Shown in pieces: positions 26,223 to 64,000 of a stretch of DNA of 64,000 nt; position 1 is the stretch's first letter, and every line of letters starts with the position of its first letter. The stretch lies in assembly GCF_964204645.1 (NCBI RefSeq), contig NC_134030.1, positions 18,312,210 through 18,376,209 of the forward strand. Direction: 5' to 3'. This stretch comes from Tubulanus polymorphus (Eukaryota; Animalia; Nemertea). Position numbers and translations under genes: made by a program. A model generated the notes under the pieces. It was not told the DNA's origin. It saw only the letters and a list, made by a program, of their open reading frames with translations, and ran no database searches.

Positions 26223-26728
26223 AGGCTAATTTGCGACCGTAAATGAAAGAAATACGACTCGAATATTTTTATTTTTATGATGCGTGACACGCAAATCTCC
26301 TATTAACACTAGTTATGAGAGAAGAATCCACACGAATGAAATGTATCAGCTTCATAATGATCGTTAATCCTTGAATGACGATTCTTAATTAACACAAAAA
26401 ACTTAATATAAATGATTTGTATCGATTGCTATAGAATTTCCATTTAAAGAATGCATTTATCAAATTACGTCCATTGACTCCGAAAATGAACCTTTAAACC
26501 CGTAAATTAGCTAAACTCGTGCCGTATTAAGCTATTTAGATTTATCGCAGTCTTGTGAAAATTTGTAAGGAGTCCTAATATATTCCCTGTATAATCAAAA
26601 CTTAATTTCTATGTAATGCACGTGTTTTAATTTATTTATTTAGTATTTATTTATTTCTGTCAAAGTTGTTTACAAACTTGTAATGACAATAAATAAAAGA
26701 TGATGATACATATGACGGTTTATGCGAT

Positions 26729-37570: not shown

Positions 37571-40500
37571 ATGAAGAACTGGATCTGGTTGGTAATCGAT
37601 GTAATTCTACTGCTGACAATCTCGTTCCATTCAGAAGCTGTATCGGTACGAAATAAGAGAAATACTGGTGAGTTAAAATGATGAACTACTTTTAAACTGC
37701 AGCGTCCGGTCCGTATATTGTGTATTTGATATTTCAGCACCTGATGGAGTTGTACTGGACAGTGTGAATGTATTACCGGGTAAAAGAATATTACGTATAT
37801 TGTGTATTTGATATTTCAGCACCTGATGGAGTTGTACTGGACAGTGTGAATGTATTACCGGGTACACGTGTATTACTGTCGAAGGAAGGTAAAACTGTTA
37901 GTATTACCTGTAAACAGAGCAGCTCTACAGCGACTGGTGTAGAATTCCAGCTACAAGTGAACAGTGGAGCAGGAGGCACCTGGACTCCAATACCTACAGC
38001 ATCATCAACAGTTTGGGTTTTTGAACTGGAGGCTGGAAAACAGTATAAATGTGTAGCCATTAATTCAGCAGGAACGAAAGAAAGTGAAATCTACAAATCA
38101 GATGTAATTAGTGAGTATTGGCGGAAACTCGATTGTTCTCGTAAATAAAATGGTCATGTGATAATCTATTTTTTTCTTCAAAATACAACTGAACCATCGC
38201 GCAAAGAAAAAATATAGAAATAAATTACTGGCTTCGGTGACAGTTACCACTATCCTTCAAATACATCCACTGCTTAAATTATTCCATGCGTATGATAATT
38301 CAAATGGCCCCTCACGCATGGGCAGTCCACACTGCTAGAGTTACAGCCTCTAGGCTTCTTGGGCTGTCCATCATAGACTATAATTATAATTTGGTTATTG
38401 TATTAGAGTGTTAAAATCTTGTAATGTACATACATAAATGCTTAGTTTCGTACTTGTATTTTATATAGTTCTATGAAAATAAATCAATAATTAGTTAAAA
38501 ATAACTTTGGATGCGAGTAGGCCTAACCTTCCGGTGCATTCAATTCAGCATTAATCGATTCAAACTGAAGGAAATAGGAAAACTTAAGATTTGTTTTATA
38601 TCATTCTCATTATAGGTATAAAGATAAATGAAAACCCGTGTAAACTGCATGAATTCCAATCGCTGGCTTGTACTTGTGAAGCCACTAGTAAGATCGGTAA
38701 TCCAAACATCAAAGTAAAATGGTACGCTGATGGATTTACTGAAGGATCAACAGAAATTGTAAAAATATATGATCAAGGCGTAAATACTCCGGTGAAAGAT
38801 GGAGTTATCAACAGGAATCAGATGCGGTTTAATCTAATGATGCATGCAACATTGATTCAATGTAAATTGAGTAGATACAATGGTTTAATACTACCGAGAC
38901 CACTTCAAAATCAAATATTTTATGAAACAAAAATGGACGTTACGTGTAAGTTAAAAAATATTATTTTTTTTATCGTTCGTCTTTCGTGTAGTTTGAGCAA
39001 TTTGTTGAAACCACAGTTAGAGATTTAGGAGTTACTTGGATAACACTTTTACAATGATTTCATATCCTTTCGTTTTGATATTTCATGTAAGAAACTCGCA
39101 ATGAGTATTTATGCATGTGTTTATTTGCTATGTCAAATCTAACCTTCTAGAAACAGATTATATCTATAGAGTTTGATGCAGGGACGGATTCATCCCCAAA
39201 ATACGGTATAAATCCCTTTCAGCGCGTCTACACCGCAATGCAGTGTATAAATCGGTGATGGATTTTGCTAGTACACCGCACTGTGGTGTATTGATGTCAT
39301 TAGTAATTAGTAATTATCTCTTGAATATGGCAGCACCTGACAAATATAGTGAAATATCAGTAACTAACGATACATCGCGCTACTGTGTAGACGCACTATG
39401 TGGTATTCCCGTTATTCAACACACTAGGGTGGAATTTTTCAAAATGTTCAAAATATCTCCAGCACTATAGGGGATTAATTAGTCAGCACTGAAAGGGAAG
39501 GGCAAAACTAATCAGAAAACATAAACTCACTTATGGAAATAAAGAAAATAAGCTTATGAATTTTTAAACTTTTCAAGGTATCTGTTTAATTTTTGGTTTA
39601 CCTATGCTGTCACTTTTGAGCGGGTGCGTCCGCGTTTTGGTGGTACTTTTGTTTATGCCAGTAGTGGTGCCGATTTGTATGAGCAAAAACGGTTCATGAC
39701 ATGAGCGCCTAGCAGCATGCAAAGAACCGGATTCGTAGCTTTCGATTCCTCAAAGATTTCTGCCGAAAACGATATTTTTGACGGCAGATTTTTCAGATCC
39801 TCGGTTTTATGGCATAAACATCCGATGACCTACATCTATGACGTTTTGACGTAGATTCCTCATTTACGGGGTTCCCTATGCATCGCAACAACCAATCAGA
39901 TCTACGCGCACCTGCTACGGAGTCCCGTCGATACTCTATTTAGTAACACATTTTCTTTGCCAAACTTGTATTCTAAATCTATATTGTATGAATAGAAATA
40001 TCAATTTGAAAACATCTTGCTTTCTAAAATTGATATTTGGTGCACCAGGGCTTATTTTGGTGACTAAAACGTGCGTATGAATATGCCGATGAATTTTACG
40101 CAATACTTATTTGCATATAGAAAACACCGACAGGGGAACTAGTATTGTTTAGGATATATATAAACGTCATTGTGTGTGTTAAACCACTGCTAGTCCTCAG
40201 CGATCCCGTCGATGAACACGCATCTTGGTGGATATAAAAGAGCGATTTGCTTACATATCATCATGACGGTTTCCTCACCGCATCGTCACGGCTGCGGTAC
40301 GACCAACTCGGTTTTAGCTTACTGGCGGGTTTCACGGTGAAGAGTAACGGCGGCTCTGCCGTGGTTTCGTGACTCTGTTCATCTATTTGACTGGGACTGA
40401 ATTTACTCGTAGGGGCACACGACTCAATCGCCCGGTTTGCCCGCATAACAATAATAATGCGTATTTAGAAATATCCTCGTTTCTCATCAGCTCATTTTTG

Positions 40501-43500
40501 GAAAAGTGACAAGTGGCAGGATTTTAATTTTATCTCCCTTTTTACCTCCCTTAGTAGCAAGATCGGGCGAAAAAATACGCTCGTGTGCCGTTGGCTTTTT
40601 CGTTTTCTGATATACGTTCAATTATGTCGAGCATTTCATAAGGCTGTGGTAAACCTCTTGGCCCGTGGGCATTTATTTTCATTTTCCCGTAAAATTTCAG
40701 GGCAACTTGACTTTTTCAGGGGCGTGCGTCCCCTTGGATCCGCGCCTGTATTACCTACTGGAACACCTAGGTTCATATTGAGGCAACTTAAAATTTTCAG
40801 GGGCGTTCAAACGGCCCCTGCACCTACCCTTGGATCCGCCCTTGTACCTATTGGAACACCTTTCATATGGTTTTATATTGAGACGAATAAGCAAAGTGTT
40901 CCATGAACGAATATTTGTTGATATGAGGTTAAAACTTTTTCAGTAAAATTGTGAAAAAAACAAAAATAAAACATATCAATGATAAATTAAACATAATCTA
41001 TAATAATTAATAATCAATAATAAAAAATGATATCCATTAAATACATGTACACCTTTCTTTTTTCAGATTTTCCTGATGAAATTCAAACACGAGGTACTTT
41101 CACTGGACAGCCTGACATTAGAACTGAAGGAGAAGTTGTAGAATATATTTGTAGAACAGAAGGTGGGAGGCCCGATCCTACAGTGATATACCAACAAAAG
41201 AGAATAGGTTCTGAACAATGGCAGCCAATTCCTGATCCACAACCTCGTAAAGTACTTCTCAGAGGGAACTTAAAAGGCTTTGACACGACGTACAAGTTCA
41301 AAGCTAATTTCAAACTGCACAATGGAACGTCATTTCGATGTGCTGTAAAGGAGAACCTTACGTTTCCAGAACCTCGACAATTTAATCCAATCATTGTTCA
41401 TTGTAAGTAACAGTTTAATTTGTCGAATTTGAGAAATCTCTCTGAAAATATCTTCTTTAGAAGTTTGCATTGGGTTTAAGCAGTTTTCCTTGCAATGGGT
41501 ACAAACCACTCACTCTAATAGACCTATCCACCCTGAACATGTCACGATAACATCAGGTTTGACTCCCTGTGAGGGAGGAACGTGGCAGAGTCTCAAGATG
41601 TCATCAGGTTCGAATCCCTGCCGAGGGAGAAACGTGGCAGAGTCTCGCGATAACATCAGGTCCGACTCCCTGCAGAGGATGATGGTTCTACTATAACAAG
41701 GGTTCAGACTCTGCTAGGTCGGATATTTGTAACAATTTTCACTTTTTTGTTTTTTCAATCAGATTTTGCTGCACCAGTTTACAAGAAATCCAGTGAAAAT
41801 GAAACAAATGCAGCGTATATTGTAACAGTTAATAGTAACCCATTGACTCAACAAGTTACCTGTGACCCTCCAGCTGTCGTTCAAAAACTATCAAACTCTC
41901 AGTGGAATATAACGATACCTATCGTAAATAGTACCACAACTGACTATAGAGGGCAGTGTTTGGCTGATGGTATCAATGAAAGGGTCATTAATGTCGCTGG
42001 TTATCATCACGCCGGTCCAACTGATGAACCAGGTAAGATTCCGGGCCACAACTGGATGGATTTGATCTGAATCTGAACATTCAAATGATTTACTCAGATC
42101 ACTAGAAAATCTTCTGTGTCTGTACTTTTCAAAATCACTCGCCTTGAATTGGGCTTTGAACCTATATCGAGGTTGACGGCAGTTGTATGAAATCATCTAT
42201 TGTGATTACCAAATTGCTGATTCATTTAAATCGATTGTGCTTAGTTCCAGATGAATGGAATGGAGGAATAGTGTTTGGTGCTGTAATCGGTATACTGATA
42301 TTACTGACTCTGATAATACTGTTTATACTGTGTCTTTGTGGCTGCTGTAAGTTTTACCTAAAACCATCATTTAATCTAAAAAACAGTACAGACAAACTGC
42401 AGAATCAGAATATTGTATTATTTCTAATTGACAGTGCGGTGCAGAAAACCTAATGATCAAATGTGTAGATGTGGAAATTGTAAGTTTTGTAAAAATTCAT
42501 ATACGTTATGCTTAAGATTGCAAAATGGTTTACAAGGCTGGAGGGATTCGAGGGTCTATTCAAAAGTATTCACTTTCCATTTGTAAATATGTACGGTAGT
42601 GATGAAAGAGTACTTGAAATTGAATTCAAGGTTGGGTTGAGTATTAACAAACGTTTGTGTATGTACATTTTATGAACTGCACATCATCAAAACAAAACGT
42701 ATCATTAAGTTACAGTAAAATAAGACGATTATATTATATTTTGTTTTCCAGTTAACTGTGTTTGTATAGAAAACCTTATGATAAATATTGTTTAGTTGGA
42801 ATTGCTGCATCGAGGGCAATGAACTATGTGTTTATTATTGCTAAATTTCCATAGAAAAAGACCATCAGATCAAAATGAAATACCATATCAATCTGTTCTT
42901 TTGTTGTCGTTTGTTTTCAGTCCCTTCTTTCCGCAAAAAGCCTGTTGCTAATGATACAGTGGATCCTGCACAAGGTAAGGAAGATAACTACTTTAGTAAC
43001 AGTATTTTCCTTATGAATACGAAATTATTAGATTGGTATATGATACTTGACTGTCTTTGACACTGTAGCATGCTTTTATGATAATCTAGTTGCGCATTTG
43101 TTTTGCTAAATCCTTCCACACTTCTAGCGGAAATTTGCCCGCAAAAAAACTTTGCTAAACCCGCACTCATATGAACTGTGTTCCTGTGGCTTCAAGAACA
43201 TTTTCCCTAAACAGAACTCACAACTTTCTATACCTTCTTTCAAACTGATGAAGATTATCAGTCAGGTACAATGAAGTGCTGTATTATTTTTCATTTGCAG
43301 TGCCGTTAAGACCAGTTGCGAATGAACCAGGTGGATCTACTGATGATAATGAGGATGCCTCCTCAGATGAACTGTGTCACTGTTTTTGCTGTGAGTTCTA
43401 TATATAAGCTGATAAAGATTAATATTCAGTAACTGTAGAATAAAATTTTGTATAATTTTCTATTTGCAGTGCTGTTTAGAAGTGAGCCGTGTTCATGTAA

Positions 43501-43505
43501 TTGCT
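37571..43505 (+). CDS. Gene B 5' part: signal peptide, 4 Ig-like domains, TM, Cys-rich cytoplasmic micro-exons (no stop codon)
   Basis: Exons 37571-37667 (MKNWIWLVIDVILLLTISFHSEA, RNKR), 37820-38110, 38616-38945, 41067-41402, 41763-42032, 42251-42346 (TM GIVFGAVIGILILLTLIILFILCLCGC), 42435-42479, 42921-42974, 43215-43265, 43301-43390, 43470-43505. All GT-AG, all phase 1, all internal lengths multiples of 3, frame open throughout. Confidence 0.85.
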
Positions 43506-46500
43506 GTAAGTTGTATTCATTTTGAAACTTTAAACATCAATAATCCTACAAAATCAAATGTATTGTCGTCAAACCTGTGTCAAAAAGTGTTGATATAGGG
43601 CGAAGGAATCTCAGCATGTCCTTATCTTCTAATCGCCATGATCAGTAGTACACTTCAAATTCATTTTCACAAAGCTATTCAAAAGTTACCCAGCTGCCAA
43701 AGTCTTATCATGCATTTTACGCCCCTACAACGCGTTGTCACTCTCGTCTGTCCGCCCGTCTGTCCGTGCGTCGGTCCGTCTGTCCGCTGTGGTTTCCGTG
43801 CCCTAGCACCTAAACCCATTATTTCAAACCCAGATATTCTTGACCCCTTTTGCGCATAATCTCAAACTCAAGCGGGTACAGATCAGTCGTCAGGTAAGAT
43901 ATTCAAAAGATTTTAACGCAGGCTTAAACTGCAAATAACCCTCTTTAACCTCTGTGAAAATAGGAAATATAGCTTGAAGAGATACTTAATATTAAGATAA
44001 TAAATATTGCGATTTCTTTTACGCACGGTTTAGATATGCGGTCCTTGGTTTCACATCGTCACTGTTCTCAATTGTTGAGTTCAAAAATTCCAAGAATCGC
44101 CAGCAAATATCTGCATTTCATTTCCTTTAAAATGGTGTATAAATTGATTTCGTCGAGCACGGGACTGCAGAACTATATGATATTCAATCTAAACTTATGT
44201 TTTAAAAATGAGCGCAAATTATCGCAACAATAGGGACCTCGAGGGACCGCCACAAAATGGCGCCTAGAAACTGGAAACTTCTTTATTCAACAATTGCGTT
44301 GTACTATATGGAACCCTGATGCCCCGGCGCACGTTTTCGATGGGGGCATACTGTATTCACTTTCGTCTTTCCGTCTGTCCGCAGTGGTTTCCATGCCCTA
44401 GATGTACTATAGATGAGGTTAGTAACTGATAAGATTTTGGGTCATGTAAGGCCAAGGTCAAGGTCATAGGAAGCCATTTTGTAAATTTCATTGCCGGGCT
44501 CTAACTCAGTAAACAGTTTAAGATAACTGAGTGAATTCTGTAGATGGGTTATCCGTGAGGATGACTTATTAGATTCCAGTCAGTCAATGGTCAAGGTCAC
44601 TGGTAGCTGTTTTGTATTTTTCATTTTCTGCCTTCATAAACGGGTCGATATACATTCGGGGTGTATTTTACACACAGACATTTCACCTAATCTTATCACA
44701 GAGCGGTCGCACCAGTCTTCAGAAATATTCTAGTTATTCCAGAGATATTATAGTTCATAGCCGAGGACGTCCCTTTGATAAACGCGTATATGTGGATTCT
44801 AGAAAGTGTCTTCTTAACCGATTCTGACTTACTGACAAAGTCAGAAAAAAATGACGTCAGAGTACGTCCGGTTTGAAGTTCATGGGGAAATCGGAAGTAG
44901 AATTACGTCACGCTAAAATCCGGCAGCAAAGTAACTAAAATCCGGCAACTTTTGGATCTGGAAATTTAGTCCAAGATTGGGTCTTTGAATAGTTTAACAA
45001 TGAACCGCGTCGATCGAACGAGTTCAAAATAGCTGAAATTCCCTTAGCAACGGAAGCGAATTCATGATAAACAAACCACGCGCCGGGGCCCGGTTCAGCC
45101 ATCGCAGGCTCGAATCCCGGAGAATTACGCTCTCGCGCGCGCGTGCGACAGTCAACCCCAGCCGCAGCGCTGAAATATGTAATCATTTATCAAATATAAT
45201 GACCCTAAAACTGCGATGAGTCGCGTTGCCGTACGATTTGCTTAAAATTTCACGGCAGCTCGGCGGCTCGCGGATGGATCGGCACGCCACGGTCTCGCTC
45301 CGAGGAGCAGCGACATCGCGGTCGGCAAAAACATTAGTCTCCGCCCCTTCTTTCACCAAATAAAGAATTCGGTACCGCTGGCCACGTGCACTATTAATAT
45401 TGAGCCGTAGATTCTCGGTACTCGACATTCCCCGAGAATTAGAAACAAATAAATATTTTTCGCGAGAGAAATCAATTTTTGTATTTGACATTTCAATTTT
45501 ACTGCTTCTAATTTTCGATTTTTTTTCTGGCAGAAAAAAATTATGCGATTGATGCGTTTCAACGTGTCTTTCATTTTTTTCTCGTCTTCATTTACTTTTC
45601 GAATGGAGCTAATTTCTAAATTAACACCAGGTCAAATTCTTCACTATTGCAAACCGTCTCAGTTTCACCATAATGTCGGTTTTTACATTTCGGGTTTTAC
45701 AAAGTGGTTTAAACCATTAAAAAATTCCTGATACAATCTAAATCGAAATAGTAATCTTTTTAGCAGTTTCTTCAATAATTTAATGCTCGGGGCCCAAATC
45801 TACAGAACAATTTCAATATCGAAATAAAATTCATAGTCTTCAAGAGTTTCTTTCCAGTTTCATTGACAAAAATCAATTATCTCGGTGTTCGTTTAGTCAG
45901 TGACATTATTTTGAGTGTTTTTGTTACACTCCATACGTGAACGAGGTTGTTTTCGAATCGTTATGATTTCTTAATCTTAGTATGAAAAATTAAATCAAGC
46001 TGCGGTGACGAAGCGTCCGTCACTTAGATTTCATCTATTACATATTAAGCGCACAGCGAGCGCCGAAGGCGCGAGCTGGAAGCTCCTTAAGTTAATCGCG
46101 CGTATGAGGCAAATTCAAATTTTCAATATTTGAGCTCAGACCACTATTCCAAAATCTTCTATATCCTATAGTAAAAACAAGAAATTCGAGAGTTTAGTTC
46201 ATATATAAGCGCGTAAATTCAGGGGAAATCCTGCTTATCGCTCATAGGCCAGCATCTTAGCTACGCTAAGTGGTTTTCGCCCCACATGCCCAACCTAACT
46301 TTTGAAATAATCAAACCTTTAGAAAAGAGGGGTATCCCAGAACAGGTATGCCAGTACATCCGAGCTAAATATCTAAGGGAATCCCCCACCGTGTTTGGTA
46401 CCCTTACTCCAAGCAAAAAAAGTCCAGGGAATCCCTTATTTCATCATCAATCCAGGGGCGGATCTAGGGGGATGGGTAGACAGTATTGGAAGGAAATTTA

Positions 46501-49500
46501 AGGGCACCTTTCTGATCTTAGGGCACACCCAGTATCCAGGTCAATGCGAGCGCCGAAGGTGCGAAGTCCTTAGAGGGCGGTCTGGGGGCCCACCCCCAGA
46601 AAATTTTGAAAATATGGTACCATTTAAAGGCTTTTAGAGGGCTTCTAGAGGCTAGCAGAGCAATCCAGAATTAACGAATAACGAGACAAGATTTCAACAC
46701 ATGCGGATAAAAAATGAAGCTGGCGAACCCATGAAAGAATGGTTGTCGTCAACTTCGCCTAGTGCCCCTATAATCTTTAAAAGTGCCCCTTAACAATTAT
46801 ACAGAATACGGCTAAGTGTCCCTTCATTGTTAACAATCGGCAAAAATTGCCTCGTCTTCACATTTATCCTTATGTCGTGTGCCATCTGCCAAACCAAAAG
46901 TGCCCCTAAAATTTTAAAAATTAGGCAAAAAAGTGCCCTTTTCTTCAACATTTTCCGCGTATAGTGCCCTCTTCTAAAGTACGAGTGCCCCTTTAGCCCT
47001 CCCTGAAAAGGCAAGGAAGGACAAGGTGCCCTCATCTAAAGCATGAGTGCCCCTTGCAAAAGGAAAGTGCCCTTTTTAATTTATCATGATTAAAGGCTTT
47101 ACAAATATGATTATCTCTCCTCACTTTCTCGGCAGCAGTATATACTAACCGATTAATTTTATAATTATGCCCGGATTACGGACACGGAATTAGCGGAACT
47201 TGCTGAAATAATGCCGTCAAAAATATTGCCGGTGAAATTTCGAAGGGCACTTAAAAATTCTAGACCGTATTGGGCAATACGGCTAATACGGTCTGGATCC
47301 GCACCTGCAATCTGTCTCTCAGGATCAATGGATTTCATACATATAACCGAATTTCGTTACCTATCCCATTTGCAGAAATTATGGCAACATTTATGGGGGA
47401 CCTCTTCTTCACTCTAGGTACTATTTTTGGGGTCCGGCCCTACGCATCTTCGAGCTACTAACCTAATTGTGGTCTGATGCCATTTCTCCATACCGTCCTT
47501 CTCAAAAAGGGTAAGCGATTTTTTCTACCGGCCACAGTTAGGTTTCGCTCTGCGCATGTTCTGAATATACCGGAAGTTAACAAACCGTGACGTACGCGGA
47601 AGTAAAGTTCAGCACATGTAAGTCGCAATTGAAATTAATTCTTTTTCTCTCTTTCTTCTACATGAAATACGTGTGCCACAAATGATGTTTTTTTCATGTC
47701 AAATGTATTTTGGACAAAAAGGAAGATCCAATACTCAGAACAGTAGTTGCCAAATCTGGTAGTCATCTCTTGACCGATGAGGGATTGCGGTCCTTAAAAT
47801 TAAATTCCTAAACATGGCCCTAGCCCTTGAAGCTGAAAAAAGTATGTATGACTGTACGGTTATTGATTCTTATATAATAACCCCGATTGTCGCAGGAAAC
47901 AAATCACGATACAAATATAGTCTATTCAAGAAAGTATGTAGTACTTTGATAACTTTTCTCGTTTTTCATTTACTCTTGAGACTCCTCATAAAATCTATTT
48001 GATTACTAGATAAATTTTGAAAACAAATATATTATGATCATTGGCGGCTACAACAAGGATAGTAATCATTGGGTTCTGGTTGTAAGTAGAATTATAATTA
48101 TTTGATAATTTCGGTATTTATTTGTCAAATATTAAGTATTTAGAAATAATGCATTTTTTTATTCATATTAGATGATCAAGCCCAAAAACTATGAAATCGT
48201 CTACCTTGATCCGTTTGGAGCATCTGATTTTAAAAAAGCTCAAGCACTGAAGAATATTAAGTAAGAAATCATTATGAAAACTGCGTTATTCTCTATCGAT
48301 GTCAATGTATTATGTATAATTTCCAAACTATTTCTCATCTCAATGTAAGGTCTTACTTGACTTACTGAGCCACAGCCCTTGGTAGACATGACATTGATGA
48401 TATTGAATGGTCCATAATCGAACCGCCTCACCAGAAACAACTTGATGGGCATAGTTGTGGCGTGCTGACTATTTTGGTAGGATTGATTTGTTTAATTTCA
48501 ATATTATTGATTATTGTTTAACAAATTTCATTCAATTACATATGTGTATTCAACAGCATGCTGGCAGTGTTCTTCAAGGTACTGACACGACCCATATTTC
48601 AACAGTAAATGCAAATTCACATCGTTGGACATCAGCCGCTGCACTAGTTAATGAATCAGGTAGGCCCTCGACCTTATAGTTATTAAATTCAAAGTTCATT
48701 ATAATGCAATCCTTTTTAATTTTAGTGCCAGTATTAATGAACATTAATCAATATCAATATACAGTTCTGTTATTTCTTTTCTAGGAGGAATGCAACTATT
48801 GCTATCAATGGTACCATGTGGTGTGTCTACCTCATACTTTAAACCGAAAGATAATTCTAAATTTTGATTGGAAATGTATTTTCTGCAAGCAGTACTGTAC
48901 TAAGTAAAGAAATAAACACTTAAATTCATGATAAGAAATAAACACATTAAATTCATTATATATGCTGAATTCCATTTTATTTTTTGTCTTAATATTTACA
49001 TCCTGTCATAGAAGGAAACGGATCGGAAATCTTTTCGGATTTTAACCTTAAAATTTCGATTTTATCATCGCAGAATAACGTATACCTATTGACACTGTAA
49101 TTGATTTGACTAGCCATGTGCTTTACTTCCGCGTACGTCACGGTTTGTTTACTTCCGGTATATTCAGAACATGCGCAGTGCGAAACCTAACTGTGGCCGG
49201 TAGAAAAAATCGCTTACCCTCAAAAAGTGTAGTTTACATCCGGGACACATGGGCATTGGCTAAATCGCGGCGACGAAAATGACGGTCAGGGACGGACTTT
49301 CGTCGAAACTAGCGGGCCGCGTCACGCGGTTAGTTTGTTACGCGAATGAAGGATAACAAAATGATTTTGTGTAATTTCAGAATATTTACAAAGAATGTAC
49401 ACAATATATTGTCAAAAAATGTTATTTTTAGTTCGTATTCCTCCGTAGAAACCGATTGGAAGACTGGATTCGAATCCCACAAAAAGCACAGTCCCTTAGC

Positions 49501-52500
49501 AACGGGTCGAATTTTTTAGAATAACAAGCGCGCCGGTTTCACAGCATCACTAAGGGTCGAGTCCCGGAGAATAACGCGCGCGCGGTCCGCGTGTTACAAA
49601 ATGACCGTCCCGCTCCACACAAGTACTGAATAATTAACTCAAAATTTTGCCAATCCCTGGGAGTAAAATGCCGTTCGTTTTTTAACATATCGTATCTTTT
49701 TTTTACTCTCGTTTTTCAAACGTTATTCACCTTTTCCGCTTCGAGTAAAATACGTATACGCTATAATCCGTATTTAAAATACCGTTGTTCCATTAATTCC
49801 GAACCCATGCAACCCGTTGTAATACTTAGGAACAAATCTTTAGTGTAAAACATATAAAACTATTGAAGCCATAAGATTTAATGTAGAAATCTGACGTTTT
49901 TTAACTACAGAAAAATTTATTCTCGTGTAATCGATAAAAACAATAGGCTCTCAATATGTAATCAACATTCCCAAACTCCCACGTTGTTTTTCGCAGAAAA
50001 TGATTTCTTTTTGATTTAATCACGGGTCCCTTAATTCGCTCGAAGGTTTATCATATTTTGGGTGATTTTCTTTGGTCACGCCACCGGGTGCCTTCCTTCA
50101 GCAAAACCTACATTTTTGCAATGTAGAACTTGGGAACAAATTTCTTGTGTAAAACATAATATGTCAAAGTCGAAACTTGGTGAAGCGCAAAGCCAGTCTT
50201 AAGTTTTAATGAATAAATAGAGGCGAGTGCCCTTTCGGCAACTTATATAGAATTCTACATTGTAAAAAAACATAGGTTTCGCAGGGGCACCTGTGTTCGA
50301 TGTGGTCCGTGGCCAAAGAAAATCACCCAAAATGTCGAAGATCCATTTGAGCGAAGATTCGCCGTGATCAAATACATGTATAGAAAAGGAATTCATTTTT
50401 TGCGAAAAAACATGCTTTGGGAGTGTTGATTACAAATTGAAAGCCTTGTTTGTTTTATCTTTCATACGACAATAAATCCTTCTGTTTCGTCAGATATGTT
50501 CTTCGAACGGCTTTAACAGTTTTATATGTTTTACACAATAAATTTGTTCCCGCAAGTTCTACATTGGTTTTGCTGAAGAAAGGCACCCGGTGGCGTGACC
50601 AAAGAAAGTCACCCAAAATACGATAGACCTTCGAGTGAATAAAGGGACCCGTGATTAAATTTTTTTTTTAAATCACCCAACATATGATAGACCTTCGAGC
50701 GAATGAAGGGACCCGCGATTAAATTTAAGAAAAAATCATTTTCTGCGAAAAACAACGTGGGTTGGGAATGTTGATTTCATATTGAGAGCCATTGTTTTAT
50801 CGATTACACGAAAATAAATAGTTTTATATGTTTTACACTAAAGATTTGTTCCTAAGTATTACAACGGGTTGCATGGGTACTTAATTAATGGAACAACGGT
50901 ATTTTAAATACGGATTTTTACTCGAAACGGAAAAGGGGAATATCGTTTGAAAAACGGGAGTAGAAGACACATAAAGATAAGATATGTTAAAAAACGCGGC
51001 ATTTTACTCCTAGGGATTGGCAAAATTGTGAGTTAATTATTCAGTACTTGTGTGGAGCGGGACGGTCATTTTGTAACACGCAGACCGCGCGCGCGCCTTA
51101 TTCTCCGGGACTCGACCCTTAGTGATGCTGTGAAACCGGCGCTCTTGTTATTCTAAAAAAATTCGACCCGTTGCTAAGGGACTGTGCTTTTCGTGGGATT
51201 CGAATCCAGTCTTCCAATCGGTTTCTACGGAGAAATACGAACTAAAAATAACATTTTTTGACAATATTTTGTGAATATTCTTTGTAAATATTCTGAAAAT
51301 TACACAAAATCATTTTGTTATCCTTCATTCACGTATTAAAACTACCCGCGCGACGCGGCCCGCAAGTTTCGACGAAAGTCCTTCCGTGACCGTCATTTTC
51401 GTCGCCGCGATTTAGCCAATGCCCATGTGTCCCGGATGTAAACTACACTTTTTGAGAAGGACGGTATGGAGAAATATTGAAAATTTGAATTTGCCTCATA
51501 CGTGCGATTAACTTAAGGAGCTTCCAGCTCGCGCCTTCGGCGCTCGCTGTGCGCTTATAAAGGCGAGCCAGTGCCTCTTCAGTCATAGAATTCTACATTG
51601 TAAAAAAAAACATAGGTTTTGTTGAAGAAGTCACCTGTGAGTGTGACTGTGTTCGGCGTGGCCCGTGGCCAAAGAAAATCGCCCAAAATATCGAAGATCC
51701 GCTATGAGCGATGGTTCGCCGTGATCAATAGAAAAGAATTTCATTTTTGCGAAAAAAATATACTTTGGGAATCTTGATTACAAATTGAAACTGAAAGCCT
51801 GTTTTTGTTATCGTTCATGCGTGAATAAATCGTTCTGTGTCGTCAGTACGTTCTACATTAAATCTTCACGGCTTCAATAGTTTGTTTTGCACAAGAAATT
51901 TGTTCCCAAGTTCTGCATTGTAAAAAACGTAGGTTGGAAGGTACCCGGTGTTTGGCGTGACAAAGAAGATAACACAAAATATCATAGATCTTTGAGCGAA
52001 TTAATGGACCCGTGATCAAATTTCAAAAAATGAAAATCATTTTCTGCGAGAAACAACGTGGGAGTTTGGGAATGTTGATTACATATTGAGAGCCTATTGT
52101 TTTTATTGATTACACGAGGATAAATTTTTCTGTAGTTAAAAACCGTCAGATTTCTACCTAAATCTCGATCATGGCTTCAATAGTTTTATATGTTTTACAC
52201 TAAAGATGTCTTCCTAAGTATTACAACGGGTTGCATGGGTACGGAATTAATGGAACAACGGTATTTAAAATACCGGATTAGCGTTATACGAGTTTTACTC
52301 GACACAGAAAAGGGGAATAACGTTTGAAAAACGGGAGTAAAAGACACAAAAAGATAGGATATGTTAAAAAACGCACGGCATTGGCAAAATTTTGAGTTGA
52401 TTATTCAGTACTTGTGTGTAGCGGGGCGTTCTTTTTGTAACACGCGGACCGCGCGCGTTATTCTCCGGGACTCGAACCTTAGTGATGCTGTGAAACCGGC

Positions 52501-55500
52501 GCGCTTGTTATTCTAAAAAATTCGACCCGTTGCTAAGGGGGACTGTGCTTTTTGTGGGATTCGAATCCAGTCTTCCAATCGGTTTCTAAGGAGAAATACG
52601 AACTAAAAATAACATTTTTTGACAATATTTTGTGAATATTCTTTGTAAATATTCTGAAAATTACACAAAATCATTTTGTAATCCTTCATTCACGTATTTA
52701 AACTACCCGCGCGACGTTGCCCGAAAGTTTCGACGACAGTCCGTCCGTGACCGTCATTTTCGTTGCCGCGATTTAGCCAATGCCCATGTGTCCCGGATGT
52801 AAACTACACTTTTTGAGAAGGACGGTATGGAGAAAATATAGAAAATTTGAATTTGCTTCTTACGCGCGATTAACTTAAGGAGCTTCCAGCTCGCGCCTAC
52901 GGCGCTCGCTGTGCGCTTAATATGTAATAGATGAAATCTAAGTGACGGACGCCTCGTCACAGCTTGATTCAATTTTTCATAGTAAGAAATGATAGCGATT
53001 GGGGAAAACAACCTCAAGTACGGGGTAACGAAGTCGAAAACATATTGTCAGTGACAAGAAGAACACTTAAATGTTGTTAATGAAACTGGAAAGAGAATCA
53101 ACTCCAATATTCCATATTGAAATTGTACTGTAGTTGAGCCCAAAGCAATGAATTAATGAAGAAATTAAATCAACTTAGTCAAAACTTGGAAAATTTAAAA
53201 TCAATGCTCGAGTTAAGGGGTGGGAAGAAAGAAGATGAAACTGTAACTCTGTAACTGTAAGTTTTGATTCATTTCTGAAATTTGGGCTTGATATATTATA
53301 AGTCCAAATTTCAGAAATGAATCAAACCTCATAATTCTTTAATCTTATATTATAAGATCAAATGAAATTTAATATTCTAATTTTTGCGAGAAAAAAACTT
53401 GAAAAATTTCTTATAAATCAGGTCTCGGTACCACTGTCTGCTAAAAAGATTATTCTTTCGATTTAGATAAAGTGTCATTTTTTAATGGTTTAAAACTCTT
53501 TGTGAAACCATAATGTAACCAATGACATTTCGGTGGGAACTGAGAGGGGTTTTTGCAATATTGAAGAATTTTGACCTGTTAGTTAATTTAGAAATTAGCT
53601 CCATTTGGAAATAAAAGGAAGATGAGAGAAGATTACAACGCATTTCTTAATTACCTTCAAAGAGAAAAAAAATCGAATACGCGTTGAAACGCACAAATCG
53701 GAAAATTATTTTCTGCTAGAAAAAACTCGAATTAGCAGGAAATGCGAATGTCAGTACAATAATTGATTTCTCTTGCGAAAAATATACATTTCTTTTTAAT
53801 CCGCCTGGAATACGGTTCAAAATAAGCAGTGCACGCGGCCAGCGGTTCCGAATTCCTTATTTGGTGAAGAAGGGGCGGAGACTAATGTTTTTGCCGACCG
53901 CGATGTTGCTGCTGCTCGAGAGCGAGACTACGCCGTGCCGATCCGCCGCCGCGCTGGCCGAGAAATTTTACGACTCTAACGCGACTCTCACCGCAGTTCT
54001 TAGGGTCGTTACTTTTGATTAAAAAAGTGTATTTCAGTGCTGCCGCTGAGAATGACAGCTGCGCGCGCGAGAGCGTAATTCTCCGGGATTCGAACCTGCG
54101 CGCCGAACCGCGTGGAACCGGGCAGCGGCCGCGTTTTGTTATTATGAATTCGCCCCTGTTGCTAAGGGAATTTCAGCTATTTTCAACTCGATCGATCAAC
54201 GCGGTTCATTGTTAAACTATTCATCAACCCAATCTTGTTCGAAATTTCATGAAATAAATACATTCTGAAATAACCCGATCCATAAGTTACCGTATTTTAG
54301 TTAGTGGAATGCCGGATTTTAGCGTGACGTAATTCTACTTCCGATTTCCCCATGAACTTCAAACCGGACGTCAAGTGACGTCATTTTTTTCTGACTGTCA
54401 GCTAGTCAGAATCGGTTAAGAAGACACTTCGTAGTACCCACATATACGCGTTTACCAAAGGGACCTCCCCCGGGCGCCTTTGGCGCCCGGCGTCCGTCTA
54501 TTAAACTGTTAAAAACAAAGCCGTTCGTATAACATATCTGACGATACAGAAAGATTTATTGCCGTATGAAAGATAAAACAAACTACTGTCTGTCACACAT
54601 GCTCTTCGTGCGACGTTTTGGTCCGTAATTTCGTTAATAATCGGTTGATCTGTAAATATTATGCATCAATTTGTTCAGTAAGGAATTTGCATTCAGAAAT
54701 AAATCATGAACTGGCAGAAATTTGTTTGTGTTTTCTTCTATCAGCGATAGTTTACCTAGCATACGCTCGCGTAATGCTGAAAAACGGCTTTTATGGCCCG
54801 TCACGTGGCGCTACCTACTGTATTTTGATATGCTAATGAGCAGGTGATGACGTCACTGTAACGTTTCCGAGCGTCCGCGGAGCGGATTTTTCAGCATTAC
54901 GCGAGCGTATGCTGAGTAAACTATCGCTCATAAATGAAAACAAAAACAACTTAAGTGAAAATTGTTGTTTATTTCTGAATGCAAATTCCTCACTGAACAA
55001 ATTGATGCATAATAAAGGTAGATAAACCTATTATTAACGAAATTACGGACCAAAACGTCGCACGGAGAGTAGGTGTGACATACAGTAGAGTATGCTTTAA
55101 TTTTGTAATCAACACTCCCAAAGCATTTTTTTCGCAAAAATGATTTCCTTTTCTATACATGTATTTGAACACGGCGAATCTTCGCTCCATTAGATCTTCG
55201 ACGGCATTTCGGGTGATTTTCGTTGGCCACGGACCAGACCGAACACAGGTGCCCCGCAAAACCTATGTTTTTTTTACAATGTAGAATTCTATATAAGTTG
55301 CCGAAAGGGCACTCACCTCTAGTATTTATTCATTAAAACTCTGGCTGTGCGCTTCACCAAGTTTCGACTTTGACATATTATCTCCATCAATATTTAAGGG
55401 GTATATTCAAGATTGAATTTTTTGATTGTTCTTAAAGTGTTTTTCTCAGCGTTGAGAAAATTACGAACACTTTCAAAACTTTTTTCCGCAGTCGCCTCGC

Positions 55501-58500
55501 AGAAGGGAAGTTTGAAAGAAAAGACGGATACGGTCTCGGAGCGGAGTAGAACCGGTCGAGGTGAACCGTCGATGCCCGGTTCTATATTAGCTGAGAATGA
55601 ACCTAAACCCGATGAATTAGGTTAGTACTAATCTTTCTTAATCCATTCCTTGAAAGGTAATTTTGATTTTCCTAATAAAGAAGTTTCCAGTTTCTAGGCG
55701 CCATTTTCGCAACAATGGGGACCTCGAGGGACCGCCACAAATTGGCGCCAAGAAACTGGAAACTTCTTTATTATAATTTGCTAGTCACGTGTAATCTAAT
55801 CAAATAAGATTTGCACAACAGGATGAATTTGACGCCTTGTTCTAAACAGCTGAGAAGAAACAGCCGGTTTTTAAGATATTATTTCCTATGAATGAGTTTC
55901 AGGTTTCTCTTTCAGTTTTGACATTAATATCAGTTTTTCGAAAAAGATCTGTGAATCCACCATCTTCAAATCGTATGAATCACCTCTCAATGTGATTTGA
56001 TGATTTGACGATTTTACTAAAAATCAACTCTTATTTGACGAGATAAATTCGCCTCAGGGGTACCCTCCAAACTTTGTGGGTACCTAGGTGTAAGGGCTTT
56101 CCATTACATTCCGTTGATGGCTACTCATCATTAACCAAAATAAACTATACAATAATGTTTTATGATTCAGCACAAATTACATGATGTGGAATCATTATAT
56201 CCACAGTGGAATCAATAGTTTATCCACAGTGGAATCAGTTGTTATTGTTTGATATATTTGCCGTTAATTCAACATTAACATGAATTTTGATTTCGATTAA
56301 ATCGAAAATTTTGTTTTAAGCAAAATTGTTCTTAATCGATTGGAAATTTTGTGGCCCAAATCTTCTACCATATACTTCCAAAAAATCGCCAAAATTTGTA
56401 TCTTTTTTACAGACGTTGCTACAATTCAGAAATGTCTGAAAGAAACATACAAACGAATGATCGATGTTGAAAATTACAAAGAGGTTTGGTGGAGCGAAGA
56501 ATTCATCAATTTCAACAAAATCTTCACCAAAGAACACGCGAAAATTCGACCCCGAAAACAGAGACGCGAGGAGCAGTCAGTGATTTTACCCAATGATTTT
56601 GAGAAGCTTTTCACTTATGACGAGCAGGATGCGAAACGCGTGTGCCTCGTAGGTGAACCCGGTATGGGTAAAACTACACAGATTGTTAATCAAGTGTTGT
56701 CATGGGAGCGATCACCGTTTCTAAAGAAGTTCCGTATGTTATTCTATATACCGTTAAATGCTCTGCCCGCTGATAACGCATGTATTTATACCTACATTTA
56801 CAAAAATATTTTGAGTCGGGAAATCGGAGAGGGCCTGTCGATTGATGATTTTAAGAGATTCGTACTGGAAAATGAAAAAAAATCGATATTTTTGCTAGAC
56901 GGCTTCGACGAGTTGAAAAACGATAAAGCGAAGGAAGACATCGTACAAGTGACCTATGAATTACCGGAAGCGCATATTGTCATAACAACACGTGAGTCCG
57001 GAGGCACCGATATCGTCAATGATCAAAAATTCATTATTGCATCCATTTGCGGCTTCAAACAGGAAGAAGTCATCGATATTATGAAGAGAAAATTCCCCCA
57101 GTGTGATGCAAATAAGCTATTCGAGAACCTCAAAAACGCAGCACCACTTTTATTTAAAAGTATCTACTACAACCCGTTCATACTACATATGTTTTGTTTT
57201 CTGTATATGAACGAGGAAGAAATAACGATACCACCAAAACTCACCGATATCTACATCGATTTGACATGTTTTCTGATCAGTAAACGCAAGGGTATCGAGT
57301 TGTCGAAGGAATGTTTCTTCGACGACATCGAAAATTCGGAAGCGCTTAAAGAAATTTGTCAAGTCGCGTATAAGACGCTCATCGCGCGTCATAAAAGCTT
57401 CAGTGGAAATCGTCTCAAACTCGACGAATCGAAGATGACGGCTTTGACGTGCAAAGAGGTGTCGCCGCGACGGAAATCAGACAGCTCCGTCCAGCTACAG
57501 TTCATACATAAATCTGTGCAGGAATTTCTGGCGGCGGTACACTCGGTCGTGCAATTCACCAACAGTAATGAAATACCCTGGAAAACACCCTGGAACAAAT
57601 GCACGTTTGAACAACTACCGGACGAACTTGAAAAATATGGTGAATTATACCCGAGATTCGTGGCAGGGCTGCTGCATCGTCACAAGCGTAACCCCGGCCT
57701 CGGTGAACTGTTCAAGACTTTAATGGATAAACATTCATTAATATTAGAGCATGACTTCTGGCGCATGGAAAGAAGGAGCGTACTATTTGATATCGAAATG
57801 ATGCTCATCCCCGATTACGAACGCTTTATCAAACTCCAATCCGAAAGCTTTTGGTTATCCGATCAGTTTTCAATCTACCTGGATGAAACCGACTGTCCGG
57901 ACGACGCCATTAACGAAATAGTTGACTACATGGGAAAAATGTTGATTATAGATCGATATAGCATGTTCAAGAAAATGAACATACTCGCAAAAATACTCGA
58001 ACACAAACAATGCCCGATCGAGGTAGTTTATTTCAGATATATGAGTAACGAACTGAAACCCGGCGGAGAGTACGCTGATGAATACCGCGTATTAGAAACA
58101 GCTATAGCGGGTAACACTAGTCTTCAGGGTATGATAATCTATACACTCGAGTCAATAGACAAGAATAATCTGTACTTTACTTTATGTCAGGAGAGCAACA
58201 GTATAAACTGGTGCATGTGCGTTAATCTAAACGACTTCGGTAACGTATGTTACAAGAAACTCGATTCTGAATGGATTGAGACGAGTCACGTGATTGAATC
58301 TGAAGATGCAGTAGAGTTGACAAGTCGTGATTCTTCCACCCAAAACAAAGAAGAAATTCTGTTCATCAGAACTGCGGCTACTGCGAAACTTTTAGGCAAC
58401 ATTCAGAGATCGTATCCGTTCCTGAAGCATCTGTATCTCTGGGTAACTCCCGATAAAGACGAAAATATATACGGAGAACTAACAAACCTAATGGCGGGGT

Positions 58501-59093
58501 TGAAAAGCTTACATCTTCTAAACAATTCAACATTCGAAAAGTATTTTTCCGATGAAGAATCGAAATCTGCAGAGATCAAAGGAATTGCGCTCGTGCTAAA
58601 TGAAGTAATGACAGATCAATCGACAGAAGTCAGTTCAATGAAGGAATTAAAGCGTTTCACATGTCGCGGACAAGATTTTGAAAAGAGCCACATTCTAGAT
58701 CAACTGCCGCGGCTGACTGTATTGGCAGTAGATTTGCGGTCAAAGGACGATGTCGATGCACTTGTTCGATATCTATCATCGGATGCGGTAAATCAGCTGC
58801 GAGAAGTCAGTATTTACAGCTTCCTTAAAAAAACGGAAGAGTACATCGCCATTTTACGAACACTTAAAAACGTCTCATCGCTTCGTCGGTTAAAGTTCCA
58901 CTATCACAAAGTGAGGTTTGATCCAAAGGATAATATCGATATATTTGTCGAATTAATCAAAGATCTTCCGCACCTATCATACCTGTTTATCAGTTGCCGC
59001 CAGGGTAGCGACTTAACTGTGGTAAAAGACTGCATCACATCAAACGTCAATAACCTCAATGAAAGAATTAGAGCATTCTCGTATTGGCATTAG
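37571..59093 (+). CDS. Predicted full gene B: Ig(x4)-TM-Cys-rich-NACHT-LRR-like receptor, ~1470 aa
   Basis: Phase-1 donor at 43505, candidate micro-exon 55934-55972 (FFRKRSVNPPSSN) and phase-1 acceptor tcttttttacag|ac at 56412. Summed coding length 4416 nt = 1472 codons including stop. The join is inferred. Confidence 0.6.
37712..37864 (+). repeat. 82-bp-offset tandem duplication of the intron/exon boundary of gene B Ig1 exon
   Basis: cgtatattgtgtatttgatatttcagcacctgatgg..ttaccgggta occurs twice (acceptors at 37737 and 37819). Confidence 0.9.
41545..41680 (+). repeat. ~52-bp tandem repeat with B-box-like GGTTCGAATCC core
   Basis: catcaggtt(c/t)ga..ccctg..gaggga..aacgtggcagagtctc in ~2.5 copies. 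Confidence 0.6.
43715..44690 (+). mobile_element. HINE/pearl-like fragments with (GTCC)n-like microsatellite
   Basis: gtctgtccg repeats at 43746-43790 and 44372-44382, shared gtggtttcc(g/a)tgcccta, and ggtcaaggtca motifs. Confidence 0.45.
46453..47307. mobile_element. MITE with CAG..CTG termini and 5-bp TSD CAATC (hAT5-like), nested in another insertion (46132-47484)
   Basis: caggggcggatctag / ctggatccgcacctg; caatc at 46448-46452 and 47308-47312; many AGTGCCC subterminal repeats. Confidence 0.7.
47510..49218. mobile_element. Mutator-like (MULE) non-autonomous element, ~100-bp TIRs, 9-bp TSD CTCAAAAAG
   Basis: TIR ggtaagcgattttttctaccggccacagttagg..; TSD at 47501-47509 and 49219-49227; the empty site is visible in the inverted paralogous arms (~51447, ~52808). 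Confidence 0.85.
47755..48907 (+). pseudogene. Spliced Ulp1/SENP-like (C48) cysteine protease + partial PHD finger carried by the MULE
   Basis: Exons encode HWVLV (48067), YLDP (48202) and QLDGHSCG (48438-48461), the His-Asp-Cys triad with oxyanion Gln. Last exon is CNYCYQWYHVVC..WKCIFC. In-frame TGA at 48366. Confidence 0.75.
54618..55060. repeat. Palindromic element with near-perfect inner arms
   Basis: agcgatagtttac..catacgctcgcgtaatgctgaaaa (54743-54784) inverted at 54887-54928; outer arms 54612-54703 / 54968-55062. Confidence 0.7.
55675..55772. repeat. ~100-bp palindromic MITE-like element; partial copy at 44222-44287
   Basis: aataaagaagtttccagtttctaggcgcc..ggcgccaagaaactggaaacttctttatt. 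Confidence 0.65.
56413..59093 (+). CDS. NLR-type NACHT domain + winged helix + C-terminal degenerate LRR, single large exon
   Basis: Walker A GEPGMGKTT, Walker B IFLLDGFDEL, sensor-1 IVITTR, NPFILHMFC, WHD FIHKSVQEFLAA, LRR-like LKHLYL/LKSLHL/LPRLTVL/LRRLKF/LPHLSYL. Confidence 0.95.
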
Positions 59094-61130
59094 CTTCCCT
59101 ATGGACGAACGAAAGACAACTAAACGATATTTTCCTAATTAAGAATTATGACAACTTTAAACATGGAACATGTTCTAAACAATTCTTTTGAATCTACAAT
59201 AGAGTGTGTATGTCAATTTCTGTATATAGATTCTGACGGTGATGGTTCGAGGTACTATCATCACCCCTCCCTTCCCATGATAGTAGACCGAGATATGCCC
59301 GTCAATCTACGACCAAATTCATTTTTTTTTAAATATTATACAGTGTAATTGTGTAACTGAATTTAAGCCTAGATGAAATACAGTATAACTGAATTATAGT
59401 ATAGCTGAAATACAGCGTAACTGAATTATAGTGTTGATTAAATACAGTAACTGAAGCTAAGTGTATCAATTTAAATTCAATTTCAATTTCAATTTATTTC
59501 ACAGTAAAGCGTAACATTGTAGAGATTAAAAACAGTGAAACTGAATTGGTGTACCGTAGTTGAAATATAATTTGTAACTATATCGAGCAGAAATACATTC
59601 AGTGGTGTACATGTAATTACTTTTTGCAGAATTATCAGTGGTATTTCTTTCATCCCTTAATCTTACATTGTATCACTGTATTTTGATTAAAATACAATGT
59701 AACGAGTTAACAGTTTAACTATATAACAATATATCTTAAGTTAAAAAATGTGCTTTTTATTTCATTTGAAACAGTTTTGTAAAACATAAGATTTTTGGAC
59801 TTAAGGACCACTTTTGGACTTAAATCTCGACTATGGAACCGGCCCCAAGCTGGTAAAAATGTGCTGCTAGAAATTGCTAATAATGTAACGTGCTTATTTT
59901 ATTCGCTTAAATAAAAAGGATTTATATAGGCATATAGAGATGTTCTTATGTTAACTGCAGCTGGGGTAAAATCAAGTGAACAGCATTTTCTGGTGGAGGA
60001 TAAGTCACAATTTAAAAACTAACTACAATTTCTATTTTATAGAGTTGATTCCATATTTTTCTGAGTTTAAAATCGATAAATATTCTAATATATAAAGAAT
60101 ATGATATAAACTGATATGTCTTATGCAGTGTTCAATTCTCAAATCAATTGATGGATGCAGATGTTTAAATCTGTTATAAACTTTATGCATGGCGGAGAAT
60201 GGATTGATTTTAGTAGAGAACCGCGGTTTATAGAGCGAAGATGCATTATAACAGTTAGTGTAATGTAAGTTCATTGATCCCAATGAAACGGGACACTTGG
60301 TTGTTCGGCCATTATTGTTTTACGTGGCGCTGTACCATTCACCAAGAACCTGCGAGTGTCTGATGTTACTGCAGTTTTGATTTCACTAGGATCGTAGAGA
60401 AATTGAAGGTGATTTCTGTAGAGACAATCACACTGCCAGGACTATGTGTAGATTGTACCATAGATCTGTTTTACTACCGGTACGTATATCTTCACATCTA
60501 GAGGTGTTTGTACATATCTCCCGTAAAATCAGACAAAATATCTATACTTACCTCTTGTGAATATATGTAAGATCAACTAAATACAAGATGTAGGTTGATA
60601 AAGGTGAGTTATTGAAGTTTCAATTTCTACTACATGTGTGATGAATATTCTCTCTTCTAGAAAGCGCTGCTACAAACACTCTGAAAATGTCTTATTCCAG
60701 GTAATTGTTACAGACCAGTTTTGGAAGTAAAGGCTATCTGAACATGAAAGTGAAACTCTGCATGATCAGGATTAGAGGGCGGTGATGAAATATCAAATGT
60801 CTGTCACAGGGATGGACAGAGACTGCTCATCTATTGGTTAAACACATTAGAAATGAACTACATTGTACATTGTAGGTATTTGTAGGTATTGCACAGACTA
60901 CAATGTTTCATGTATCGAGTCAAATCCTGATGGTGATAGTTGCAATTTTTTCAGATGAGCTCTTCTTCCTCAGGATCTGAATGCTGCCAATACGAGCTGA
61001 CGAAACCAACCCGCCCGGATAGATAGGTGGTGAGTAGATGACCAGATCATAAAGTGTTACATGTATCGAGTAAGATTAAAAGTTCTAATAGTGATCGTTA
61101 CGTTTTTATTTCAGAACCAGCTCTTCTTCC

Positions 61131-62835: not shown

Positions 62836-64000
62836 TTACACACATCTCGCGCGGACTAGAATGTCTCTAAGATTTTTGCCGCGTGTAAATAGTATTCTAG
62901 GAGGTTCCTTGAATATTATTCTCAGAGTCGCGTTCGATTGGATTATCTTCCAGTGTTTTGTAAGCGACTGACGGATATTATCCGTGTTCGGATGGTATTT
63001 GGTGATCAGTGAGATTGAATCAAATGAGCGCTTTTTTGTGCGCGTGTGTAAGAGATCCGTACGATATCGTTGGTCCGCTTTGTAGATTTGAGCGCGGATT
63101 TCGCGAGCACTATAGCCTCGGGCCCGGAGGTAACCCTGTAGTTTTTTACATTGTGAGCGGTATTCGCTTTCGTCCGAGCAGATTTTCTTAAATCTGAGAG
63201 CCTGTGCGTATGCAATGTTGTTGCTGCAGTGAGGCGGTGACACGATTCTTTGTGTAGGAGCGAGTGTGCGTCCGTGGGTTTTGTGTACACCCTTGTTGAG
63301 AGTTTACCTGAGTTCTCAAAATCTTTCCCTTTGTAGACTTCAACGTCTAGGAAGGGTACCTTCTCCCTTGATTGTGTCAGTTCGTATTGGATGGTACGGT
63401 GTGATTGGTTCATATGTTCGAAAAATTCGAGTAGTTTATCTTCACCGTGGGTCCAGATTGAGAATATATCATCTATATATCTCCAATATAACATGGGTAT
63501 AGTATTGTTCGGTGCCGAGCGGAGACATTTAGTCTCGAGATAATGCATGAATATGATCGCTAGACCCGGGCTGACTGTTGAACCCATGGCGCAACCCTCT
63601 ATTTGAAGGCGGTGTTCGTTTTTCCCGAAAGAGAATTCATTTCTCTTCAGTATTAGATTCAGGAATTGAACGAAGCGTCTTTTGTCTGGACGGCGAACTG
63701 CGTATTGTAGCGGGAAGTCATCTAGACTTCTTAGGATGCTACTGATGGCTTCTCCGTGAGGGATGTTGGTGTATAGACTTTTGACATCCATTGTCACCAA
63801 TATCGCATCTTTCCGGAGGGGAGGGAGGGAATTGATTTTGTTGAGAAAGTCATTGGTATCTTGGATGTATGTTGATACTCGACTCGCGATTGGTCTCAGA
63901 AAATAGTCCAGATATTTGGATATCTTTTCCGTGGGGCCATTGTTGCCGCTTAGGATCGGTCTCCCCGGGTTGTTGACCTTGTGAATTTTCGGTAGAAGGT
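62836..64000 (-). mobile_element. Penelope-like retroelement reverse transcriptase (5' part outside window), one frameshift at ~63240
   Basis: PKIHK..PGRP, LVTMDVKSLYTNIPH, GCAMGS, YWRYIDDIF, FLDV, YTKPTD, then thumb IAYAQALR..RARGY..RGKNLRDILVRA followed by stop. Confidence 0.9.

Follow-up and report, generated by a model that had tools for sequence, protein, structure and literature searches.

The window, the whole stretch of 64,000 nucleotides that was analysed, corresponds to C6:18312210-18376209 in the 268-Mb assembly of the nemertean Tubulanus polymorphus. The NACHT exon in this stretch showed a 100% match to the T. polymorphus RefSeq gene LOC141906642, for which the proteins P0001 (1486 aa) and isoform X1 (1494 aa) are modelled. 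The RefSeq entries XP_074652018/017 unite the Ig, TM and NACHT-LRR parts in a single chain. For whole-protein searches the RefSeq proteins were used as queries; the exons were searched singly and the junction codons were checked individually. A neighbouring gene at 28.8-33.9 kb combines a domain similar to D3 with a tail of Tyr repeats. The following features were determined for the gene:

37571-37667, plus strand: exon 1, encoding the signal peptide and, behind it, a basic RNKR motif that may be a convertase site, from exon anatomy and hydropathy
37712-37864, plus strand: 82-bp tandem repeat that includes the acceptor of the D1 exon and its first codons
37820-38110, plus strand: D1, Ig-like domain (Pfam Ig_2, E 0.0045 alone and 8e-5 in P0001)
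38616-38945, plus strand: D2, Ig-like domain (Pfam Ig_2, E 0.026)
41067-41402, plus strand: D3, Ig-like, C2-set-like domain (Pfam C2-set_2, E 0.004)
41763-42032, plus strand: D4, membrane-proximal beta domain, putatively Ig-like
42245-42346, plus strand: TM exon (Kyte-Doolittle 3.39; acceptor from RefSeq)
42435-42479, 42921-42974, 43301-43390 and 43470-43505, plus strand: four small phase-1 exons, juxtamembrane tail
43506-56412, plus strand: long intron, its ends homologous to an intron of the sister gene
55492-55620, plus strand: linker exon of the RefSeq models, 43 codons (129 nt), phase 1-1, in DNA absent from the sister gene
55934-55972, plus strand: originally proposed 39-nt micro-exon, inside a high-copy repeat
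56413-59093, plus strand: single terminal exon of 2681 nt with NACHT, HD2 and LRR-like solenoid

The 10 exons between 37571 and 43505 form an open chain with GT-AG introns and phase 1-1 borders, and no stop was found in any junction codon. The last of them (43470-43505) runs without a stop up to a strong GTAAGT donor at 43506. This is what the original prediction had described, except that it counted 11 exons. RefSeq takes these exons as well, with the acceptor of the TM exon set at 42244/42245, 6 nt upstream of 42251. At the 5' end, isoform X1 comprises 8 extra residues upstream in exon 1. The first unit of the 82-bp repeat (37738-37779) could serve as an optional in-frame exon of 14 aa; in paralogs this repeat reaches up to about 13 units.

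The Ig Pfam scores of the LOC141906642 protein fall below the curated cut-offs. Nonetheless, the ectodomain can be assigned to the immunoglobulin superfamily based on the weak Pfam Ig matches of D1-D3, on the paralog P0037, which lies above the Pfam cut-offs for ig and Ig_2, and on the ESM Atlas matches, all of which are Ig-clan clusters. The AlphaFold model of the ectodomain was poor (pLDDT about 36.5), and a fold search with it returned no match at E<=0.001. D2 and D3 showed 33 and 68 matches in the genome, respectively. D4, for which no Pfam match was obtained, is present in all members of the family, with one copy per member. Past the signal peptide, hydropathy revealed a helix at residues ~455-473 as the sole TM-grade segment, and a type-I topology is inferred for the protein. 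The following tail is Cys-rich and partly acidic, with 12 Cys within residues 470-552, and is probably palmitoylated. The same series of small exons recurs in the sister gene LOC141906641.

The NACHT ORF (56340-59093) has its strong phase-1 acceptor at 56412/56413, and no in-frame ATG precedes this acceptor; a downstream in-frame ATG is found at 56457. The NACHT domain scored 54.9 bits compared to a Pfam cut-off of 26.7, with Walker A at 56652, Walker B at 56889, sensor 1 at ~56979 and the winged-helix His at 57507, and its P-loop motifs are invariant or near-invariant across 12 paralogs. From ~57744 to the stop a beta-alpha LRR-like solenoid follows. In the AlphaFold model of the intracellular part, regular beta-alpha repeats start at about residue 1040, with pLDDT mostly 60-89. 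A Foldseek search with this model gave NLRC4 (4kxf) as the best PDB match, with an E of 9e-12 at low TM-scores, and the Atlas gave NLR and LRR proteins; NLRP and F-box/LRR proteins were also among the fold matches. Since Pfam LRR_14 (E 0.002) stays below its curated cut-off, the C-terminal LRR is assigned by its predicted fold and not by the sequence cut-off.

Pfam detected no death-fold, BIR or TIR effector domain in the protein, as originally predicted for the NACHT ORF with regard to death-fold and TIR domains; signal peptide and TM take their place. A RHIM-like motif was not found in the linker either. Like NLRC4, NAIP and NLRP proteins, LOC141906642 comprises Walker A/B, sensor 1, winged-helix His, HD2 and an RI-like LRR. 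In contrast to these, it has no CARD, PYD, BIR or DEATH domain, and its N-terminus consists of ectodomain and membrane anchor. It thus differs from the canonical tripartite animal NLR, which is cytosolic and bears an N-terminal effector.

Between the two halves lies the intron of 12.9 kb, whose origin can be explained by comparison with LOC141906641. The sister gene shares D4, TM and the four small exons, the last of which splices directly to the NACHT exon over 3841 nt. Three segments of the window are homologous to this 3841-nt intron (43506-43609, 43617-43709 and 56305-56412), whereas the middle part (43710-56304) is absent from LOC141906641 and full of nested inverted-repeat elements. Since the ends are shared and the middle is not, the gap is interpreted as one intron enlarged by insertions. 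Accordingly, the older join would lead from 43505 to 56413, and both candidate linker exons sit within inserted DNA.

The reading frame is kept on all three routes, which result in 1443 aa for the direct join, ~1455 aa with the micro-exon and 1486/1494 aa with the RefSeq exon 55492-55620; the predicted length of ~1470 aa lies between these values. For exon 55492-55620, one similar stretch exists elsewhere in the genome (C6:22.525 Mb). The micro-exon at 55934-55972 is open and in phase 1-1, as had been stated, and the acceptor at 55915, which had been said to give an immediate stop, reads in phase 1 in frame into it. As a linker, the micro-exon is probably wrong and no exon at all: it is part of a dispersed repeat (55764-56009; ~85% identity at >=40 scored sites, 609 candidates in a genome search), has the weakest donor of the set, shows no counterpart in four paralogous loci and is not used by RefSeq, which takes 55492-55620.

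The order of Ig, TM and NACHT on the same strand was found at five loci on two contigs, namely the window, C6:18.44 Mb, C6:22.26 Mb, C6:22.31 Mb and C9:0.32 Mb. At four of the five, RefSeq contains joined models (LOC141906642, 641, 708 and 709), which are the output of one automatic pipeline. Each of them enters the NACHT exon by a canonical phase-1 GT-AG intron. The acceptor is common to all 11 distinct NACHT exons that were checked, again with no upstream in-frame ATG. In the tree, the NACHT of LOC141906641 is the sister of that of LOC141906642 (95/95; bootstrap 86-89 without outgroups), and dN/dS values below 1 between these two genes in both halves (D1-D4 0.33-0.55, NACHT exon 0.61) indicate purifying selection. 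As far as sequence comparison can tell, the strongest point for a fusion is the direct splice of LOC141906641 together with the intron homology.

A different explanation would be that annotation has merged two genes, an Ig-TM receptor with a short tail and a cytosolic NACHT-LRR protein whose translation starts at the ATG at 56457, downstream of a non-coding first exon. If 43506 is read through, the frame closes after 6 codons, and an AATAAA lies at 43999; a short isoform ending past 43505 is possible. Models of short-tailed paralogs exist, and in at least 12 paralogs this ectodomain is joined to a non-NLR tail, so ectodomain and NACHT need not occur together. In the Logan contigs over 55380-59300, no splice junction was spanned on any route. 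Run X2, which counts in favour of a single gene, is RNA-like, with exact contigs over 57664-59300, none over unique intron parts and its 5' part masked by paralogs, and run X1 is DNA-like, with unspliced contigs across exon borders. Against two genes speak the five loci with identical order, the conserved donor and acceptor, the short homologous intron in LOC141906641 and the gap itself (43506-56412), in which neither a homolog of the paralog terminal exons nor one of the cytosolic-type first exons was found. Two merged genes are thus considered very unlikely, and LOC141906642 is very probably one gene whose parts are spliced into an Ig-TM-NACHT-LRR fusion. The proposed single type-I protein is well supported by the RefSeq models, the five loci and the intron homology with LOC141906641.

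The NACHT-LRR exon is present in the genome about 22 times. D1-D4-TM occurs with four kinds of tails: short Cys-rich, long helical, NACHT-LRR, and helical plus NACHT-LRR (P0189). The long helical tails are built from phase-1 micro-exons (at least 12 models) and gave no match in Pfam. The number of ectodomain domains ranges from 4 in LOC141906642 up to 11 in paralogs, with no V-set match among them, and no ectodomain homologs were found outside Tubulanus. The NACHT-LRR exon is also found behind short N-termini with RHIM-like cores, a resemblance judged by pattern; the NACHT-LRR parts of these cytosolic paralogs are about 60% identical to that of LOC141906642. Some of the models with short N-termini could be truncated.

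On the NACHT trees, at least three changes are required to explain the Ig-TM copies, and a single Ig-TM clade was rejected with an AU p of 5.8e-11 (outgroups left out, root uncertain). This pattern would fit heads that were swapped repeatedly, Ig-TM heads that were lost, or gene conversion. LOC141906642 seems to originate from phase-1 exon shuffling that brought together an Ig-TM receptor family of Tubulanus and a NACHT-LRR family with a single exon. A transposon-rich insertion would later have lengthened the last intron to 12.9 kb.

The Ig-TM-NACHT-LRR gene is unusual; it is already modelled in RefSeq and uncharacterised, and a literature search found no papers on nemertean NLRs or LOC141906642. 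The design itself is rare and was already known from sea cucumbers, while the original prediction was not aware of a described family. In AjNLRC4 of Apostichopus japonicus, two Ig domains lie outside the cell, the TM spans 483-503 and the cytosolic NACHT spans 600-757; CARD and death domain are absent, and a second TM behind the NACHT and the lack of an LRR are reported. Its Ig domain binds microbes, and the protein drives actin-dependent phagocytosis (PMC8699970). AjNLR-new (PIK48001.1) from the same species is of the Ig-TM-NACHT type, reportedly with an inverted topology (PMC13133943), and V-set NLRs are described in Chiridota heheva (PMC8913654). At the level of the gene model, LOC141906642 resembles AjNLRC4 and AjNLR-new in combining Ig, TM and NACHT in one chain. 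It differs from AjNLRC4 by its one TM, Cys-rich tail, LRR-like C-terminus and four ectodomain domains, and it does not show the inverted topology of AjNLR-new.

The top two ESM Atlas matches to P0001 were echinoderm clusters with NACHT and V-set Ig (65 and 54 members; 0.95 and 0.94), values that express feature similarity with no alignment. Unlike LOC141906642, these clusters have V-set Ig domains and belong to deuterostomes, not spiralians. No sequence kinship to echinoderm Ig-NACHT proteins was detected, the A. japonicus proteins being compared by description only. Anthozoan TM-NLRs, with 3-5 N-terminal TM helices and a gap-junction-like domain (PMC3879445; PMC5094078), share the N-terminal TM location but have more helices and no Ig ectodomain. 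The RHIM-NACHT-repeat proteins of amphioxus and the fungal NWD2 (PMC4262963) resemble the cytosolic Tubulanus paralogs and not LOC141906642.

The closest NACHT relatives outside Tubulanus (starfish, amphioxus and coral) are distant, and those examined bear death, DED, ubiquitin, CARD or glycosyltransferase N-termini. An Ig-TM N-terminus outside Tubulanus was found neither among the best 150 NACHT relatives by hydropathy nor among 10 long N-termini by Pfam. The N-termini of these relatives favour convergence with the echinoderms, and the spiralian family is probably independent of the echinoderm one, where the A. japonicus proteins entered by their descriptions. New compared to the known systems are the spiralian family, the C-terminal LRR fold, the combination of one NACHT-LRR exon with Ig-TM or RHIM-like heads, and the occurrence of the ectodomain on non-NLR tails as well.

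Altogether, a type-I membrane NLR formed by phase-1 exon shuffling is regarded as the best explanation for LOC141906642, and as a likely one. Ligand binding to the Ig domains would cluster the receptors, and clustering, a plausible driver, would promote the oligomerisation of NACHT at the plasma membrane or the phagosome membrane. As the protein itself lacks an effector domain, the output would have to run through partners. It may nucleate the cytosolic paralogs with RHIM-like N-termini, forming a sensor/helper pair like NAIP-NLRC4, or, alternatively, recruit cytoskeletal proteins as reported for AjNLRC4. This chain of steps from ligand to partners is put forward tentatively, with somewhat less than even confidence.

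The main rival to the clustering mechanism is a tethered sensor working from inside to outside. Here, the Ig-TM part would anchor the protein at the membrane or a cell contact and the LRR would sense a cytosolic or phagosome-derived ligand, while the NACHT ring would cluster the ectodomains as output or signal to a helper. Canonical NLRs deliver their output through the N-terminus, which is in line with this reading. The same holds true for the divergence between LOC141906642 and LOC141906641, which is highest in the C-terminal LRR (51% identity, dN/dS 0.70) compared to D1-D4 (79-92%, 0.33-0.55). However, the low ectodomain dS between the sister genes suggests gene conversion, which could explain the conservation of D1-D4, and microbe binding by the Ig domain of AjNLRC4 (PMC8699970) speaks against this model. 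A tethered sensor appears rather unlikely.

A further possibility would be a paired-receptor or guard role, in which the copies with NLR tails are alarm versions of the Ig receptor family, fired by a pathogen or non-self ligand at the shared ectodomain. The four kinds of tails behind D1-D4-TM, including P0189, and the neighbouring Tyr-repeat gene would agree with this, but the argument draws on gene structure and the helical tails have no known function. Such a role, considered quite unlikely, is compatible with the best explanation as well as with the tethered sensor and does not exclude either. Going beyond the clustering mechanism, one could also imagine an independent spiralian system, in which the NACHT-LRR exon was switched repeatedly between Ig-TM and RHIM-like amyloid heads and surface Ig-NLR sensors nucleate cytosolic RHIM-NLR helpers; this is a speculative view of low probability.

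With LOC141906642, membrane-anchored Ig-NLRs reach from echinoderms to a spiralian, probably by convergence and with an LRR-like C-terminus. Swaps occur naturally in this family, since one ectodomain occurs with four kinds of tails and one NACHT-LRR with two kinds of heads. This gives access to two questions: whether clustering outside the cell can activate an NLR, and how an NLR that lacks a death domain passes its signal on. If the sensor/helper reading is true, extracellular Ig recognition would be wired directly to an NLR/amyloid signalling platform.

The long intron of LOC141906642 (43506-56412), which separates the Cys-rich tail exons from the NACHT exon, contains two inverted-repeat pairs in a nested arrangement with an overall span of 44765-54468, as well as one further element:

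44765-45588 with 53660-54468: inverted-repeat pair
49219-50162 with 51877-52817: inverted-repeat pair
47510-49218: element whose terminal inverted repeats are nearly perfect

Within the latter element, a fragment at ~48372-48480 resembles, by eye, an Ulp1/C48 protease motif. The stretch containing the linker exon used by RefSeq (55492-55620) has a single other genomic copy at C6:22525377-22525635 (minus strand), near which no NACHT was found among the matches listed. Transposon remnants were also observed elsewhere in the window, as was a CCCTAA-rich tandem array, telomere-like but degenerate, at 25684-26223:

62836-63800, 1180-1831 and 12493-12831, all minus strand: RVT_1 (reverse transcriptase), DUF7869 and DDE_Tnp_4 fragments

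At C6:21.68-22.82 Mb, at least 12 Ig-TM genes (P0190-P0202) lie in tandem, carrying the same ectodomain as LOC141906642 and helical tails of 650-1280 aa that match no known family. In the paralog LOC141906708, a helical tail from ~25 phase-1 micro-exons is placed before the NACHT. P0004 (LOC141914492, contig C19) is modeled as helical-NACHT-LRR, has a same-strand TM-exon match lying ~51 kb upstream, and may represent a sixth, truncated Ig-TM-NACHT gene. A D3-like exon resembling that of gene A was also detected upstream of several Ig-TM genes.

28758-33937, plus strand: gene A, a neighbour of LOC141906642 encoding a signal peptide, a single D3-like domain, a TM and a tail with ~7 repeated Tyr motifs (YMDM-like)
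37712-37864: 82-bp minisatellite duplicating the D1 acceptor and first codons

The minisatellite comprises 2 units in the window compared to up to ~13 in paralogs, and every unit could form an in-frame 14-aa exon.

The NACHT-LRR paralogs P0002, P0005-P0009, P0012, P0013 and P0040, spread over C6, C8, C9, C12, C32 and C56, showed short repetitive N-termini with RHIM-like cores (e.g. VQMGGNNTM in P0005) and are candidate amyloid-signalling NLRs.
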